A DNA stretch of 64,000 nucleotides from Lepidodermella squamata (taxonomy: Eukaryota; Animalia; Gastrotricha). The notes beneath the pieces are model-generated. The model saw only the letters and a list, made by a program, of their open reading frames with translations. It was not told where the DNA came from and made no database searches. The position numbers were made by a program, and so were the translations under genes. Each line of letters starts with the position of its first letter. The first letter of the stretch is position 1. Location of the stretch: positions 4,278,001 to 4,342,000 of the forward strand of contig JBLDXI010000024.1 in assembly GCA_047495785.1 (NCBI GenBank). Reading direction: 5' to 3'. Below, piece after piece: positions 1,351 through 49,343 of the stretch.

Positions 1351-2473
1351 CAGGAAGCCACTAGATGGTTCCAAAAAATCGATTTCGACAGTAAGTTATC
1401 TGTTTCTTCGAAAAATCGCGATAATGCTTAACTGCCTTCAAAAACGCCTAAAATATTTATGAGGTCTCAGTTATCCTAAATCCAAGTGGAACAACTAAGC
1501 TATTGGCCATTTATTGGAAAACGGTCAAAGAAAGTGCCTACGTGTTGGGAAACCCCTAACACGTAACCTTAAAACTGCAAAAAATTAAGTTATCATTTAG
1601 CAACAGGCAGCAACATTGATTCCGCCCCTTCCGCCAGTTTGAAATAAATCGATCGCTTGCAGGTTTTGTTGACTGCCAAGTTCAATAATTAGTTACTTAT
1701 CCGCAGGGCATATCGTCTATAACAATGAAAATACCCAACCAGCAAATTTGTTATTAGCCATTGCGTATCTATTGTATAATTGATGTTACAGCTTTTTGCA
1801 ACGCTTTTTTGGGAGAATCGATGCTTGCCATTCTTAGCTCTTTTGTTTAGATTTTTATCAATCAATAAGACAGAATGACCCCGGTGTGGTGCGCTTTCCG
1901 GTTCAACACTTTCAAGGTTTGCGCATTCATGATGTCGCACAAAGACGGGATGAAAGTAGGTAGAAATGCCAAACCCACAGTTTTTTCGATAAGCGATAGG
2001 CAAATAACCCAGGCTAGCTGTAGCGTACCACCTTTTGTATTCAGGGGAACAATGAGCGCCATTAAAATATTCATTAAGATTTTTTATTGTTCCATTATTC
2101 ATGATGCCTCATTTTTGCTCGTTGGTTGTTGGGCGTGGATCGAATTGAATGGAGTGCAAACCTCGCACAAACTCGGTCACGCAGCGGGCGGAGTCGAAGC
2201 TGAAGGATGAAACTACGATTCAATATTCAATGTTTATCCTCAAATGAGGCTTTTTGCCGTTAGTTAACTTGATTGAACGAATTGGCTCCATAGACGTCAG
2301 ACCTTAGTAGAGGTTTATGAAAATATTCAAATCTGAATGACAACATATTACAACTTCCAACTCTTTCACGCTACGAGTTCAGTACAAAGCTGAAAAAAGA
2401 TAAAATACGCGAGGGAGATAGAAAAAGTTTGATTTCTAGGGAATATTTCTCAGTTGATTCAGCATGTCAAGCA

Positions 2474-5400
2474 TCAGAAGTAACCGACCTGCAAGAACGA
2501 ATAAAGGAAAACCGCCAGTGTTGTTATGGCGAGCAATGAGTAAACAGCGAAATCAATATAGCGACACAGCTTCTTCTTAGATTTCTGCTGACTCAGCCAC
2601 AGCATAGCCAGGCTCTGCGTTGTCAACGCCAATGAAATCCCCTCCAAGCAGAACATCATATCGCTGATTAAAACGCGTTGATTGGATCGAGGAATTTTAC
2701 CAGCAATAGGCCCGATCGATGCTGTGTAAGCAAGCAGCAGGTAAACATTGAAGCAGGCCCGATCGCTGTTATCCGGCGGCAGCAGAACCGTACTGAGCGC
2801 CAGTAGAACCAACACGAAACAGGGCCCGAGTAAATTGAACAGAAAATAGTCAGGCTTACGGCGCAGCTCAATTGAAAATATGACTCGGCTCGATGCCAGT
2901 TCACTTCTGAGGTTCGGCTTGGTAGTCTCAACTTTGTACCCAATCGGACGAACTCGCCACTCTTCTAACGTGCTAGCTGAATCGCCATCCATCATTATAA
3001 GGTTAGCCTTAGTCACGCGGACGAGATTTGCCGGTTGTTCAACAGTAAATACCAAGCTACAAACTTGAGTATCAAACGGGAACTTCGATAAATCGAAGTC
3101 GCAATTGGCTTCAAACAGGCCGTATTGCCGCCAATAGAAATAGATCGGCCAGTAAGTAGCGTTGTTCCACGTTTGGTTGAGATAGATATCCATGTAGTTT
3201 CCGATTGAAGAGAAAGCCATTCCTGTTGAAGCGTTTTCCATAACGATTCCAGGATGCCAGATTGAGTTGAGGTCGACCACTCGAACGCGATTGGACACGT
3301 AAGATTCGTTGAATTGGCATCGTACAACCATCCATTTTGTGTAAAGCTGGCCGGTGATTGCGAAGGACTTGGCGGCCTCTTGAACCTTTGCAAGTCGATC
3401 GAGAGAAAATGCCATTCTGAGAGGCAGCATGGCTCGTAAAGGGCTTCTGTTCGAGGACGATAGGTCAGGACACCACAAGGTCAAGTCTTCTACAGTCAAA
3501 TCGGTTATTGGCTTGGGAGTCGGAGGCACTGGGAAATCGGCAACTTCAGCAGCTTCTTCCAGGATCTCGTAGTTTACTGCGGAAATCGTTGGGCTTACCG
3601 TTGATCCTTTTTCATCTGCAGTTCGCGTTGTTGCTGTACTAACTGAAGAGGTGGATGTCTCATGAGAAGAGGAGGTACTTTGGGATCCAGTAGTAACAGG
3701 CTGTGATGATGCAGCACTACTAAGAGAAGAAGTTGACATCTCATTTGCTTCAAAAATATTGGCCCCGTCAGGAATCGGAGTCCTAGTACTATCCAGATCA
3801 GTCTTTCTAGCTGTAGTGGAAATAATCGGATTTGCTGTTGTAGTTTCTTGTGTTGTAGTCGGTGAGGTCGTAGGTGATGTATTCTGAGGGTTCGTAGTTG
3901 TGTCTGTGGAGCTAGTGCTGATAGAGCTTGTTATCGCAGTAGTTGTGGTAGGTGGTGATGATATTCCCGTCACTGCTATACTGACTACTTCGGCCTTGCT
4001 ATCAGACCAATCGTGGGTATGCCCGGACACGACCGCGACTACGTAACTTCCCTGCTTTAAGAAATCGGCAAACATAGAATTGTTCGCATTTTGAACACAA
4101 GGGATTTTCGTTGCTGGTGCATTACCATGGTTTTTGATCAGTGCAACATTTAGATAGCCATTTAGGCTGGTTATTGAGTAAGTGGCGTCCTCCATCCCAG
4201 GTTGTGAAAATTCGCACGATCCAATATTTGCACCGGCAGTCGATTTGAGGTCGTGCAGTGAGGTTCCAGACGATTCAATGTCGTTAAAAAGATTCACATT
4301 AATTACTTCATTGAAAGGGTAGAACCTTATTTGAAAAGCTGCTTTGAAAACATCGTCAGTAGTTCTAATCCCATAATTCTCTGTTTCGCCGCAATCAACT
4401 GAATTTAGTTTCAACATCTTGAAAGTTACTAACGATTGATGAATAAGTTATTACCTTCCGTCCTAGCTATGCTGTCGTTATGAACAATGAAGATCGCATA
4501 GCCGTCATTATTGGGATGCTCGGGATTATTTGTTGTAATCCTTATTTCAATGTGGATATTTCCATCGGGTTGTAGTGCAAACGGTTTCGCTGCAAGAAGT
4601 GTGGCCCGTTTTGATTCACCTGGCTCCGGGAAATCTGTTATCATGCCGCCGTTTGTTTTTGCGCCGCAGGCTACTTCCCACGTTCCATGCCCTATCAAAA
4701 ACATGAAAATGGCCAATTGCTCAGGCTAAAGATAAACTCACTCAATCCGAGTAAATAGCTGTAGTAAAACTGATTAAAGAACAATTTGGATTGATAACTG
4801 GCAAAGTCTGGGAAATCGATGAACAATTTCTCCAACCCCCGACTTTTCACTAGCAACAGTTCCTCTCGATTGAGCGCTACAGGGTACAGCGATAGCCATG
4901 ATGCAAACGTTGGTTGGGTTAGCCAATAATCGGCACGGCGCCCTCCTAGCATAAAAGAACCCGACGAGGTATCTGCAGTCACGCCATAGCTTGTCCGATT
5001 TACATAGTCCTGGTCACAAAACAAGCCGTAACTTCTCGTTTGATTGTTGTAGGAAACTGCGACAAAGCGCCAACCCTTGCTGAATTCACATGGTCCGCTT
5101 ATTGGTGTGGGTGGTTGAACGCCTTGCTTGCTTATATATGCGTAAATCCTGTCCTTGACAAAGCCGATTCCGTACTCGTGATTCGCCAATAAATGAAGCC
5201 CGAATGATTCTTGAGTAACGAATTCAATTATGGGTACATAAGCTGGGTGATCGAATTTGAAAAACACAGAAAATGTCCACGATTGACCCCCCAATGATAA
5301 CGCTGGGTTTTCGAAAGAAGTCTCGTTCTTGGTGTCAGTACCGATTTTTAGATATGAGAAGCTTGTTATTGAATCGCTGAGGATCTCAACAACACCTGCC

Positions 5401-5546
5401 GCATTACGTCCGTCTATTCCTCGGCCGCTAACATCGGACAATCCGGTTTCGAATCTCAACGGCCAAAATGCAATAGGTGCGGGCATTTGTAGTATGCCTT
5501 GAACCAGAGCTAGTCCGAACAAGAAACAGGTATAGAAGATCAGCAT
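2474..5546 (-). CDS. Cys-loop (pentameric) ligand-gated ion channel subunit with extended N-terminus: signal peptide, LamG/pentraxin-like domain, unidentified domain, Ser/Thr mucin stalk, ligand-binding domain, 4 TM; about 988 aa, exons 5546-4742, 4691-4455, 4398-2474
   Basis: Cys-loop CDFDLSKFPFDTQVC (13 residues between the Cys), IWHPGIVMEN, LRRKPDYFLFNLLGPC (M1) and four hydrophobic helices. Two GT-AG introns (50 and 56 bp, both phase 1) join ORFs 4695-5546, 4429-4716 and 2474-4417 in frame. LamG-like motifs: PIAFWPL, DVSGRG, WRFVAVSYN. Confidence 0.8.
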
Positions 5547-5870
5547 TTTTTTAGGATGAAATGGAGTAAACTGGACAAAAAAATGGAGCGCTCAGCTTGA
5601 AAGCTAATATTTTTCCCCAACGCAATATTTCAGCTGCTTGAAGCATACTATCAAATCTTTTGTTTATATAGACTTCAAATTTCCGTACAGACAAATATAT
5701 ATACTACTTTTATATTAATTGGCAGCAAACGTTGTTATTGTCTCGAGCTTCGGCATTCACGTTACCAATGATTAGAATTAAAGAACGGACAATAATATTC
5801 TTGCTCGCAATATTCCCACCTAACGATGAGGAATCATTTGAAGCGGTTATCATCATCAGATGCACATTAT

Positions 5871-6748
5871 CAGGCCCGCCTACGTTACGGCTCTGCGCGC
5901 GCTCCTATTGGCCGGCCATTTCGCGCACACTGTTACGCAACACATGCGCGCCCTAAGTGCGCGCGTGCACAACTAAATCAATTTTAACCCAAAAAATGTG
6001 CGCATTTCGCATCTATTTTGTCAGATTTATGAAACATCATTTCATCCGAAAAAATCTTCATCTATCGATATAAAATGTGCATGGTAGGTACGAAAAATAA
6101 GCAAATATGGCTAAATTTAGGACATATCGTTAGCGTCGTTGAAAAACTCGGATTTAAGCTTGCTTACATCCGTTTCAAGGCGACGGGTGACAAGTAAAAA
6201 GTCTTTTGTTTGCCTCTTCATTCACGTTAAAAACGCCGCTATTTACTTGTCACCCGTCGCCTTGAAACGGATGTAAGCAAGCTTAAATCCGAGTTATTCA
6301 ACGATGCTAACGATATTTACAAGACACGCTCACTCGCCCAAATCGTGCGCACTGTTATTTATCGCTGATTTTACCGCGCGCGCTGTTGTCAAAGAGTAAC
6401 TTGACATTTTTGTGTCGGTTTTTATGCCAAAATAAAGAGAATTTAATCATCTATCGATTGAATATAGGGTTCTCGCTCGAAAAATTGAATTGGAAAAGGT
6501 TTTACGCGCACTGAAAAATTAGGGCGGGTGACCTCCCGCGAGCGCACCGACAAGTAACCATTATGCACGTAAAATGTTTCATTCTCAAATTTCAATCGTA
6601 ACAAATCTATATTCAATCGATAGAGAATTTAATTTACTTCATTTTGATGTAAAAGCCGAGGTGAAATTCATAGATTGCCCTTTGATTTCAGTTCAAAATG
6701 AGCTAGCCAATAGGAGCGCGCACAGAGCCGTATCGTAGGCGGGCCTGA
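5871..6748. mobile_element. Non-autonomous foldback/MITE element with about 50-bp terminal inverted repeats and an internal long hairpin
   Basis: caggcccgcctacgttacggctctgcgcgcgctcctattggc at 5871 is mirrored by gccaataggagcgcgcacagagccgtatcgtaggcgggcctg ending at 6748. No coding potential. Confidence 0.75.
6124..6316. repeat. Near-perfect inverted repeat: 75-bp arms (6124-6198 / 6242-6316), 43-nt loop
   Basis: The arms are reverse complements with 2 mismatches seen. Confidence 0.92.
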
Positions 6749-30754: not shown

Positions 30755-31217
30755 TTTGCGGCCTGGGAGATATAAACCTGGCCTTTTATGCACCAACTCG
30801 ATATCAGTTCAGAAAATTTATGCAAAAAGTTTTGAAATATCTTCATATTGATATGATACTAAAATTCCAAAAGAATTTAAATAATTTCATTTTGCTAACA
30901 AATGATGTTACGGGGGCTTGCTAGCACCCAAATGACGGTGAATTGTTATGCCGAACGGAACATCTTGTATCTTGTTTTTTCAATAAAAATTTGCAAAATT
31001 TGTACAGTGTGGACTCGGATTATCTCGTCTTCGATAGGCTACCAGTCTGCCTTTTGCTAATGGATCTTTCGTCGCTCTTATCATACAGTTTTTCCTCGAA
31101 ACTAACATTCCTTAGGGCTTTAAAAATACATATTAATATAATTTTAATAGTTAACTTGTTTTCGATAGTTTGAGTAAAAAGATTAGCGCGTACAGTCGAA
31201 CTTTTTTATTTCTTGAA

Positions 31218-31255
31218 GACGACGTTTCGGCACAAGCGGGTGCCATCATCAGGTC
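31218..31255 (-). ncRNA. Second, identical minimal hammerhead ribozyme in the inverted pLTR
   Basis: Exact reverse complement of 33108-33145. Confidence 0.83.
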
Positions 31256-31267
31256 ATATATAAGGAA

Positions 31268-33008
31268 GGATCCGTCTGCACCCAAAGCCTTGAAACGTGC
31301 CATCAACCAACTGAAGAAGCGCAAGGATATTGTCATCACTAGACCCGACAAAGGTTCCGGAGTTGTCATTATGGACAGATCAGAGTACATGCGACTCTTG
31401 AAAGCAGCATCGATCGACAACCAGGAAAAGTTCGCTCCGGTGAGCCTTGAGCGGCCGAAGACTCGAGGCCCTCGGCCTAAACACTTCCACCCTCTGCTAC
31501 AGAGAGAAAAAGAAATCAACAAGGCCATCAAACGCATTCTTCCTGAGAAGACAGCGAAAGCCCTCTACTCCAAAGGCGCGAGGCTTGCTCACCTGTACGG
31601 CTTGCCAAAAATCCACAAGAAGGTTCTGGCAGTACGTCCCATTCTGTCGGCGAGTTCAACCTACAACTCCAAGCTAGCGAAATATCTGGAGAGCCTACTC
31701 AAACCTTTGGCTCAGAACGATTACACCATCTCCGACATACTGTCCTTCAGCGAAACCCTCCGGAAGACTGAAGTTTCAGCAAACAGCATCCTGGTCTCTT
31801 ACGACGTCAAATCACTCTTTACGAATGTCCCCGTCGACGACGCGATTGAGATCATCACTGCGAAAGCCTTCCAAGACGATTGGTTCAACAAAACACACAA
31901 TCTCAACATCAAGAAGGAAGACCTTGCTGAACTCCTGTCCTTGGCAATCAAAAACCAACTGTTCCAACTTGACGACAAGCTGTATCAACAAGTGGACGGC
32001 GTGGCTATGGGCTCGCCGCTGGGTCCACTAATGGCGAACGTCATCATGGGCCACCTGGAGGAAAAACTGGAAAAGGACGGCAAGATTCCGGAGCTCTATC
32101 ATCGCTACGTCGACGACACCCTGTCCCTGATGCCCAGTGTTGAAACGGCCGAGGAGTTTCGTGAAACCCTGAACTCATGTCACCCATCACTGAAATTTAC
32201 AATGGAAATGATGGATGAGAATTGCTCGATACCTTTCTGTGGAATGCGAGTTCAAAAAGTTGGCTCGAGCCTAAACACAAGCGTCTACATCAAACCAACC
32301 GATACCGGGCTGCTACTGCATCATCAAAGCCACGTTGATTACAAATATAAGCGGAGTATCATAACAACCATGCTCCACAGAGCCTATCGACTCTCGACAA
32401 CCTGGCCTGAAGTCCACCGAGAAATTCAACGTATTAAAAAAGTCTTTGTCGACCTGAAATATCCCGCGAAGCTTCTGGATTCGACCATCGACAGATTTCT
32501 CTCTGAGAAGCAATCGCCTCACACAATGAAAACCGAGAAGCCGGACGCGCCGGTTCGAATTGTGCTTCCGTTCAAAGACGAAAAAGGAACCCAAGTTGTC
32601 CGACGACAGCTGCACGACCTGAACAACAAAGCGAACACCAACGTCCAGGCGGTCTTCACGAGCAAGAAAATTGCGGACTATTTCGGGCCGAAAGAGCAAA
32701 AGCTACCCATCATCAACTCGCAGTGCGTAGTGTACCAATTCAAATGTAAACAGTGTGATGCTGTTTATGTTGGCTGTACTGGCCGACATCTACACGTACG
32801 CATTGATGAACACATGAAGAAAGGCCCTCTCAATGAGCACGTCAAGAGTCATGGAGCAGATGTTTCCACCTTGCACAGAAACTTCACCATCCTCAAAAAG
32901 TGTCGCACCAAATGGGCATGCCTACTATTCGAGATGCTTTTCATCAAATCTATTAAGCCTAACCTGAATAAGCAGAAGGACTCTATCAAAGCTAAACTAT
33001 TTATCTAG
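31268..33008 (+). CDS. Penelope-type reverse transcriptase / GIY-YIG endonuclease; N-terminally truncated, uninterrupted frame
   Basis: ORF 31170-33008. Its first about 33 codons are just the inverted pLTR. Confidence 0.9.

Positions 33009-33616: not shown

Positions 33617-49343
<15,727 letters not shown>

Follow-up and report, generated by a model that had tools for sequence, protein, structure and literature searches.

In this work, we analysed a 64,000-nucleotide stretch of the genome of the gastrotrich Lepidodermella squamata (GenBank assembly GCA_047495785.1, contig JBLDXI010000024.1, positions 4,278,001 to 4,342,000 of the forward strand; hereafter the window), and found on its minus strand a gene predicted to encode a Cys-loop channel subunit with a long, decorated N-terminus. 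The predicted protein of 988 residues is composed of a signal-peptide-like segment, a LamG-like head, a second head module, a Ser/Thr-rich stalk and a complete channel, and the fusion of heads, stalk and channel in one gene is very probably real. The novelty lies in the N-terminal decoration, which is unusual and defines a clade of related proteins, while the channel itself belongs to the known Cys-loop superfamily. As for function, the explanation that we favour, with moderate confidence, is that of a cation-type orphan channel that carries binding heads and is gated via its own extracellular domain. A preliminary description of this DNA, made from the letters alone, had proposed the same succession of parts, with a domain of about 220 residues in second place, joined through phase-compatible introns at 4692-4741 and 4399-4454; the architecture is borne out by its recurrence in relatives encoded by single open reading frames (ORFs), where it marks a clade, and both introns proved to have GT-AG borders and phase 1. 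The features of the gene are given below in window positions, together with the evidence from Pfam, from our alignment A2 and from AlphaFold2 (AF2) models where these apply.

5546..2474, minus strand: gene, 3 exons and 2 introns; the spliced coding sequence (CDS) of 2967 nt gives 988 residues plus stop
4742..5546, minus strand: exon 1, with start codon, signal-like peptide, LamG-like domain and helical tail; residues 1-268 plus 1 nt
5484..5546, minus strand: signal-peptide-like N-terminus, residues 1-21, MLIFYTCFLFGLALVQGILQM; Kyte-Doolittle 2.13 over 19 residues, AF2 helix 2-16
4839..5477, minus strand: LamG / ConA-like jelly-roll head, residues 24-236; Pfam, profile, phmmer, ESM, AF2 and Foldseek
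4692..4741, minus strand: intron 1, 50 nt, GTGAGT..GATAG, phase 1; in-frame stop when retained
4455..4691, minus strand: exon 2, 237 nt, symmetric phase 1-1; first part of the second head module
4399..4454, minus strand: intron 2, 56 nt, GTAATA..TTCAG, phase 1; in-frame stop when retained
2474..4398, minus strand: exon 3, an uninterrupted ORF that completes the second head module and continues through stalk, linker and entire channel to the stop codon (2474-2476)
3986..4691, minus strand: second head module, residues 269-485; about 217 residues, four Cys and two N-glycosylation sequons, split by intron 2
3566..3985, minus strand: Ser/Thr/Pro-rich, mucin-like stalk, residues 486-625; by composition, without secondary structure in AF2
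2855..3565, minus strand: linker (Cys657) preceding the ligand-binding domain (LBD), and LBD-type domain (Cys708), residues 626-862; Pfam, A2 and AF2
3059..3103, minus strand: Cys-loop, C-x13-C with FPFD, CDFDLSKFPFDTQVC, residues 780-794; read from the sequence
2477..2854, minus strand: transmembrane domain (TMD), M1-M4, residues 863-988; phmmer to Torpedo gamma through M3, AF2 and Foldseek
2690..2764, minus strand: M2 pore helix, with -1' Asp, 0' Arg, 6' Tyr, 9' Leu and 23' Pro
2558..2593, minus strand: minimal M3-M4 connection, SQQKSKKKLCRY; about a dozen residues, no intracellular domain

Several observations argue for a single gene. Exon 3 contains, without interruption, the latter half of the second module together with stalk, linker and channel, and it has no start codon leading into a signal peptide of its own; the in-frame ATGs upstream of the channel exon sit inside introns, and the N-termini that they encode are not hydrophobic. 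A channel domain in type I orientation requires a signal peptide, and the sole one is in exon 1. Both introns are canonical and phase-compatible and carry in-frame stops, which also points to one gene, as do the relatives that have head and channel in single ORFs. Exon 2 is symmetric (1-1), as shuffled extracellular modules typically are. Same-strand ORFs of neighbouring genes lie only some tens of bases apart, which suggests that introns in this genome are generally short. If intron 1 is read through, an ORF of 283 residues with its own stop results; with the intron retained (4695-4741), the LamG ORF would end in an aromatic, hydrophobic tail, ...YYSYLLGLSEFIFSLSNWPFSCF, and one may speculate that such retention could yield a separate secreted or membrane-associated LamG protein.

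Further support for an intact gene came from X2, a run of genomic DNA, whose contigs contain both introns. Over 2100-5650, this run holds the exact sequence at a depth of about 55, together with a copy or copies 5-9% diverged at a depth of 100-170, which could be alleles, homeologs of a polyploid or the product of a mixed sample. Between the exact and the diverged copy, 24 of the 33 listed CDS differences leave the residue unchanged and 23 of the 33 affect the third base of a codon (binomial p 2e-5), those in the TMD being mainly synonymous. Only two indels occur in the CDS, one of 3 nt and one of net 48 nt, the latter an in-frame deletion in the stalk of the diverged copy (3576-3626); both are multiples of 3, as against one of five downstream of the stop codon, where the other four are not. 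This bias towards synonymous sites and in-frame indels is a further reason to read the parts as one gene, and at the sequence level the gene is shown to be under purifying selection, less well so for exon 1 because the listed differences fall mostly in exon 3.

The C-terminal part displays the features of a Cys-loop channel. Pfam Neur_chan_LBD matches at 53.2 bits (cut-off 26), Neur_chan_memb gives no match at E up to 1, and the phmmer alignment with the gamma subunit of the Torpedo nicotinic acetylcholine receptor (nAChR; E 7e-18) runs from the first strands through M3. In the AF2 model of the exon-3 product, built with a 61-row alignment, residues 295-640 (exon-3 numbering) reach predicted local distance difference test (pLDDT) values above 90 and form an N-terminal helix, a beta sandwich and M1-M4, with helices at 515-538, 544-567, 576-602 and 605-637; Foldseek places this part with glycine receptors (GlyR), nAChRs, Alpo4 and DeCLIC, with best TM scores by target of 0.76-0.81 (GlyR, nAChR, Alpo4). 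The family retains both the FPFD Cys-loop and the pre-M1 Arg, and the latter (R513) and P569, in exon-3 numbering, are invariant in alignment A2. By its LBD, Cys-loop and four transmembrane segments, the predicted protein is a member of the Cys-loop receptor or pentameric ligand-gated ion channel (pLGIC) superfamily, and its sequence places it in an orphan, nAChR/5-HT3-like clade that has no intracellular domain. The M3-M4 loop, initially described as only a few residues long, comes to about a dozen by sequence and to a gap of about 2 in the AF2 model. Outside the Cys-loop, Cys657 and Cys708 (309 and 360 in exon-3 numbering; 3470-3472 and 3317-3319) are nearly invariant in A2, and an additional disulphide between them may anchor the pre-LBD segment on the beta sandwich.

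The pore and the binding pocket were read against the relatives described below and against Torpedo gamma. Asp at M2 -1' corresponds to Asp or Glu in 51 of 60 relatives; Arg at 0' and Pro at 23' are shared by all 60, and Leu at 9' by 58. At 6', where 48 of 60 relatives have Thr, the query has Tyr, which occurs in just three, all of them in the 22-row clade defined below; its other unusual M2 residues are 13' Ala, 16' Gly and 17' Pro. The acidic residue before M2 that had been pointed out from the M1-M2 linker PPDNSDR is indeed present, the alignment giving Ser at -2', Asp at -1' and Arg at 0', with no Pro-Ala-Arg anion motif. An acidic -1' ring is an established marker of cation selectivity in the superfamily; its presence makes cation permeability the likelier, and the channel is probably cation-selective. 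The early remark that loop C lacks vicinal Cys extends to the entire protein, in which no two Cys are adjacent, so that there is no alpha-type loop C. From the Torpedo gamma alignment and the usual nAChR landmarks, the aromatic positions of loops A and B are both Glu, 7 residues after the Trp of WxP and 7 residues after the second Cys of the Cys-loop, respectively, and loop C is short by the same alignment; binding of the acetylcholine (ACh) type is therefore unlikely. An identity as an ACh-binding, alpha-type nAChR subunit was considered and rejected, as neither the vicinal Cys pair nor the aromatic box is found.

Relatives of the channel were collected by an exhaustive HMMER search over 1.84 billion representatives, which returned 2950 matches, the best at about 30% identity; those that were looked up all derive from ENA or Logan metagenome assemblies. 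A word-indexed protein search found nothing with the channel region and nothing with alignment A2, in the latter case probably because words from the Ser/Thr stalk swamped the candidates. Closest to the query are "minimal" Cys-loop proteins in which the Cys-loop is followed by only about 190-210 residues, without an intracellular domain, and a subset of them displays a long N-terminal extension inside one called ORF. The decorated relatives include the following.

P0129, 1099 residues: signal peptide, three LamG-like repeats (Laminin_G_3 59.3 bits) and channel
P0021, 914 residues: head and channel in one ORF; its contig neighbours are intron-split trypsin genes
P0037, P0044 and P0022: weaker LamG matches, and channel
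P0011: head that includes an EGF domain, and channel
P0005, P0006, P0019 and P0020: heads of other kinds, Thr-rich stalks and channel
P0163, 812 residues: extended form of P0008; two beta-rich modules and channel

A search for proteins with both Laminin_G_3 and Neur_chan_LBD had been recommended in the preliminary description, and P0129 joins Laminin_G_3 to a channel of this kind. By their sequences, the head kinds across the group are LamG-like or other beta-rich or EGF-containing modules. Other long matches (P0003, P0015, P0018, P0025 and similar) were judged to be tandem channel genes run together by the gene callers rather than decorated channels, and were excluded from the alignment and the tree. 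Several seemingly bare family members are truncated gene calls. The closest match, P0001, is called from an internal Met (L003 4019-6481), its ORF extending upstream into a Thr/Ser stalk and reaching the end of a beta-rich module; a signal peptide and a further beta-rich segment are encoded by ORFs lying more upstream. At this locus, no in-frame position was obtained for the intron that joins the head and stalk ORFs.

In a maximum likelihood tree of the channel parts of 61 proteins, 13 of the 14 decorated proteins, the query included, fall in one 22-row clade (support 100/97), which takes in all six LamG-bearing proteins and 7 of the 8 with other heads. Within it, the query groups with P0004, P0001 and P0007 (99/93). 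Head types are mixed inside this clade and the tree requires at least three changes between them, which suggests that heads have been repeatedly exchanged or lost; the undecorated P0004, P0007 and P0010, with signal peptides of their own, belong to the same clade. The decorated relatives share with the query the minimal M3-M4 loop, the conserved Cys before the LBD and mostly the Thr/Ser stalk, and P0129, P0044, P0037, P0021 and P0022 also have a homologous LamG-like head; they differ in an identity of only 16-30%, in the number and kind of head modules, and in that the query's second module is not detectable in any of them (P0005, P0019 and P0163 included). At the loci of P0007 (L004 2776-5389 and L005 3037-5650), a second Cys-loop gene of 408 residues lies 220 nt downstream on the same strand, so that minimal channels occur in tandem pairs in two metagenome samples.

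The identification of the first head as LamG-like is supported by both sequence and structure. Residues 24-236 score 50.6 bits against a leave-one-out profile built from the heads of the relatives' channels with the query excluded; phmmer matches this head to P0129 with E 2.3e-7, exon 1 aligns to all three repeats of that protein (BLASTP E 2e-4, 4e-4 and 9e-3), and its ESM features reach 0.97 to Laminin_G_3 clusters. These comparisons show, at the sequence level, that the head is homologous to those of related channels. The AF2 model of the head has 13 strands and a predicted TM score (pTM) of 0.64, and Foldseek matches it to ConA-like jelly rolls with E 1e-8 and TM 0.54-0.58, in keeping with a predicted jelly roll of two curved sheets. 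Ranking first is the lectin-like subdomain from the binding domains of clostridial neurotoxins and from related non-toxic proteins, with the lectin-like domain of a trans-sialidase next; being matches of a model, they give the fold class only and have no bearing on toxicity.

For the second module, no such identification was obtained. The LamG profile gives no match to it, tblastn against the related loci detects no counterpart, and AF2 predicts beta strands at low confidence, the half-module in exon 3 remaining below pLDDT 50. An assignment as an L-type lectin or Methyltransf_FA domain found no support in the comparisons with Pfam, PDB sequences, ESM Atlas and the heads of relatives; a likeness to L-type lectin heads ("DGLAFW" of P0163) is seen in the strand pattern by eye, has no statistical support and is not claimed here. 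In the stalk, Ser and Thr make up 68 of 140 residues, or 78 with Pro counted in, and AF2 gives no secondary structure with pLDDT below 50; from this composition, it is probably O-glycosylated and mucin-like. Mucin domains indicate that a glycosylated Ser/Thr stalk of about 140 residues could extend over tens of nanometres.

Some of these features are found separately in known systems. The cation-type orphan nAChR-like receptors of invertebrates (Alpo4 and the lophotrochozoan expansions) resemble the query in belonging to the cationic-type branch by best sequence matches, in a loop C tip without vicinal Cys, in having no known agonist and in being part of a large lineage-specific expansion. Alvinella pompejana Alpo4 (PDB 8BYI) has the same channel fold (Foldseek TM 0.80), but it differs in possessing an intracellular domain of about 100 residues and in starting with the LBD, whereas the query lacks such an intracellular domain and begins with about 640 additional residues of head and stalk; identity in the structural alignment is about 17%. 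The prokaryotic DeCLIC (PDB 9FTG, 9EV7; PMC9897478) is alike in carrying extra jelly-roll-type domains N-terminal to its extracellular domain, in having no intracellular domain and in the acidic cytoplasmic mouth of its pore. However, the two lobes of DeCLIC pack onto the extracellular domain and modulate gating, whereas an unstructured Ser/Thr stalk intervenes in the query, which in addition comes from an animal genome and possesses a genuine Cys-loop. The N-termini showed no sequence homology to each other, the match being limited to the channel body (query residues from about 295), and a classification as a DeCLIC-type pLGIC with an N-terminal domain was rejected on account of this confined match and of the disordered stalk that separates head from channel.

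Regarding decorated channels in animals, the DeCLIC literature states that extra N-terminal domains of pLGICs are not seen in eukaryotes (PMC9897478), and there is no mention of extra domains in a survey of pLGIC evolution (PMC4795631), in a study of the lophotrochozoan nAChR expansion (PMC6896357) or in the Alpo4 paper (PMC10338036); our full-text literature search found no paper on decorated animal Cys-loop receptors. The view that such domains are mainly prokaryotic, adopted in the preliminary description, thus matches the literature, but their rarity in animals is softened by arthropod clusters in the ESM Atlas that combine Neur_chan_LBD with Ldl_recept_a and Pentaxin (57 and 88 members), with Ldl_recept_a and Lectin_C (63 members) or with Methyltransf_FA (69 members), for which the literature search likewise found no describing paper. 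These clusters are alike in joining an animal Cys-loop channel domain to lectin- or pentraxin-type domains in one protein, and differ in their other domain sets (LDLa, C-type lectin); they are structural neighbours known from automatic annotation only, likened here by domain content and not by channel kinship. Pentraxin and LamG domains share the ConA-like fold. Matches in AlphaFold DB clusters include long uncharacterised proteins with a C-terminal channel, and also a "WSC domain-containing" fragment. Neuronal pentraxins act with AMPA receptors, and LEV-10, LEV-9 and OIG-4 with nAChRs of Caenorhabditis elegans, as separate partner proteins whose adhesive extracellular modules, of the ConA fold or another kind, place or cluster the ligand-gated channel; the query differs in that its module is a covalent part of the channel subunit.

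With the integration of these findings, the gene would code for a pentameric Cys-loop channel subunit. Known pLGIC structures show that the extracellular domain starts on the outer rim at the top of the pentamer, and five stalks would hence project from there, each bearing a two-module head, so that the pentamer would display five heads held tens of nanometres from the membrane. We infer that the heads would serve as multivalent binding modules for extracellular glycans, matrix or particle surfaces, and that their binding would place, cluster or load the channel, whose opening would be driven through its own extracellular domain by some agonist other than the ACh type. The length of the stalk (about 140 residues), unstructured in the model, favours a reaching or binding device rather than a rigid allosteric lever. 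A "sensory" role for the channel, as put forward in the preliminary description, can only be inferred.

Several findings weigh against this explanation or parts of it. Pfam Laminin_G_3 matches residues 24-236 with 21.4 bits (E 3e-4), below the curated cut-off of 27.6, and the mean pLDDT of the corresponding model is just 59.8. The second module has no Pfam match at E up to 10 for either of its pieces and no match among PDB sequences; its ESM Atlas score of 0.66 to Methyltransf_FA is below any useful level, and hhalign against the heads of relatives gives non-significant E values of 0.007 and 0.18. The residues 6' Tyr, 16' Gly and 17' Pro are atypical for M2, so that a homopentamer might conduct poorly. 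P0129, P0022 and P0011 have no mucin stalk; their heads could couple more directly, and a pure placement role may thus fail across the clade. Lastly, X1, labelled "RNA?" and of a merely guessed RNA nature, is the sole presumed RNA run that holds the locus, and it covers thinly only 2227-3400 and 4767-5147; it contains no reads at 3497-4640, no joints that skip an intron and no reads spanning either intron, and its many "opposite strands" joints have the appearance of assembly artefacts from short contigs. Splicing itself is therefore without an RNA junction read.

This last point bears on the possibility that the gene model is an artefact, in which the LamG ORF would end in intron 1 as a secreted protein and the channel would be a separate gene or fragment, or else the locus a pseudogene. 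The read-through ORF with its own stop and the missing RNA junctions fit such a scheme, but a channel exon with no start and signal peptide of its own, canonical and phase-compatible introns of a size that fits the short ORF gaps of neighbouring genes, relatives with head and channel in one ORF, and an intact frame with differences biased to synonymous sites all oppose it, and we deem it improbable. A non-conducting adhesion or recognition molecule, in which the pentameric body would be only an anchor and an oligomerisation scaffold for five heads, would explain the missing intracellular domain, the non-canonical binding pocket and the unusual pore residues 6' Tyr, 13' Ala, 16' Gly and 17' Pro. 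Nevertheless, -1' acid, 0' Arg, 9' Leu, 23' Pro, FPFD and the pre-M1 Arg are conserved family-wide, the changes in the TMD are mainly synonymous, and 6' Tyr is common to the three nearest relatives instead of being a one-off lesion, which makes this scheme quite unlikely.

Alternatively, the heads might themselves gate the pore: their multivalent binding to a surface, a glycan array or a tether would pull or reorient the N-terminal helix and open the channel, which would then be an ionotropic contact or pattern receptor. The absence of the orthosteric aromatics of nAChRs (Glu in loops A and B, short loop C) is compatible with such gating, and so are the varied heads on a conserved channel within one clade, as in recognition receptors, the short linkers of P0129, P0022 and P0011, where direct gating is more plausible, and the fibrinogen-related genes that neighbour the channel gene in the window. 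However, about 140 residues of stalk for which no structure is predicted make a poor allosteric transmitter and argue against rigid coupling of the DeCLIC type, the literature searched offers no precedent, and the undecorated P0004, P0007 and P0010 of the same clade presumably work headless; we consider gating by the heads unlikely for the query. In its general form, a new class of animal ionotropic recognition receptors in which interchangeable lectin-type heads directly open a minimal Cys-loop pore, this idea is rather unlikely as well. If it were true, glycans on food particles, on microbes or on other cells, once bound by the five heads, would elicit an electrical or calcium signal in milliseconds, and recognition would be signalled without a second messenger.

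The surroundings of the gene provide additional context, and its immediate flanks hold the following two features.

5663..5670, minus strand: TATATAAA motif, read directly about 120 nt upstream of the start codon; candidate core promoter
2227..2473, minus strand: probable 3' untranslated region, from X1 contigs at a depth of 10-18 that falls towards the 5' end, which is weak evidence

Directly upstream of the gene, 5783-5900 reaches a word depth of about 3800 in X2, as against 50-300 elsewhere, and shows many loose contig ends, both of which point to a high-copy repeat. Five genes with fibrinogen-related domains, one of them also with PAN, lie on the minus strand at 52-738, 42706-44028, 45086-45832, 60258-61826 and 62754-63755, so that, judging from these matches, genes for extracellular recognition abound around the channel gene. 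At 34015-38862 and 52517-57266, also on the minus strand, are two paralogous units with a Polycystin domain and a PKD channel, whose large upstream ORFs have no family matches and whose pieces lie some tens of bases apart, which fits very short introns. An ORF of 612 residues at 31170-33008 on the plus strand contains RVT_1 and a GIY-YIG endonuclease domain, a combination typical of Penelope-like retroelements. Rfam and tRNA scans of the window gave no matches.

Returning to the preferred explanation of a decorated, cation-type orphan channel, an animal Cys-loop channel with lectin-type heads runs contrary to the statement in the field that such additions are limited to prokaryotes (PMC9897478), and it is not an isolated case. 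If expressed, these proteins would offer a natural system for the effects of accessory extracellular domains on a pentameric channel, and their small channel body without an intracellular domain would suit structural work. Taken together, decorated channels of this kind may directly link the recognition of glycans or matrix to fast ionic signalling.

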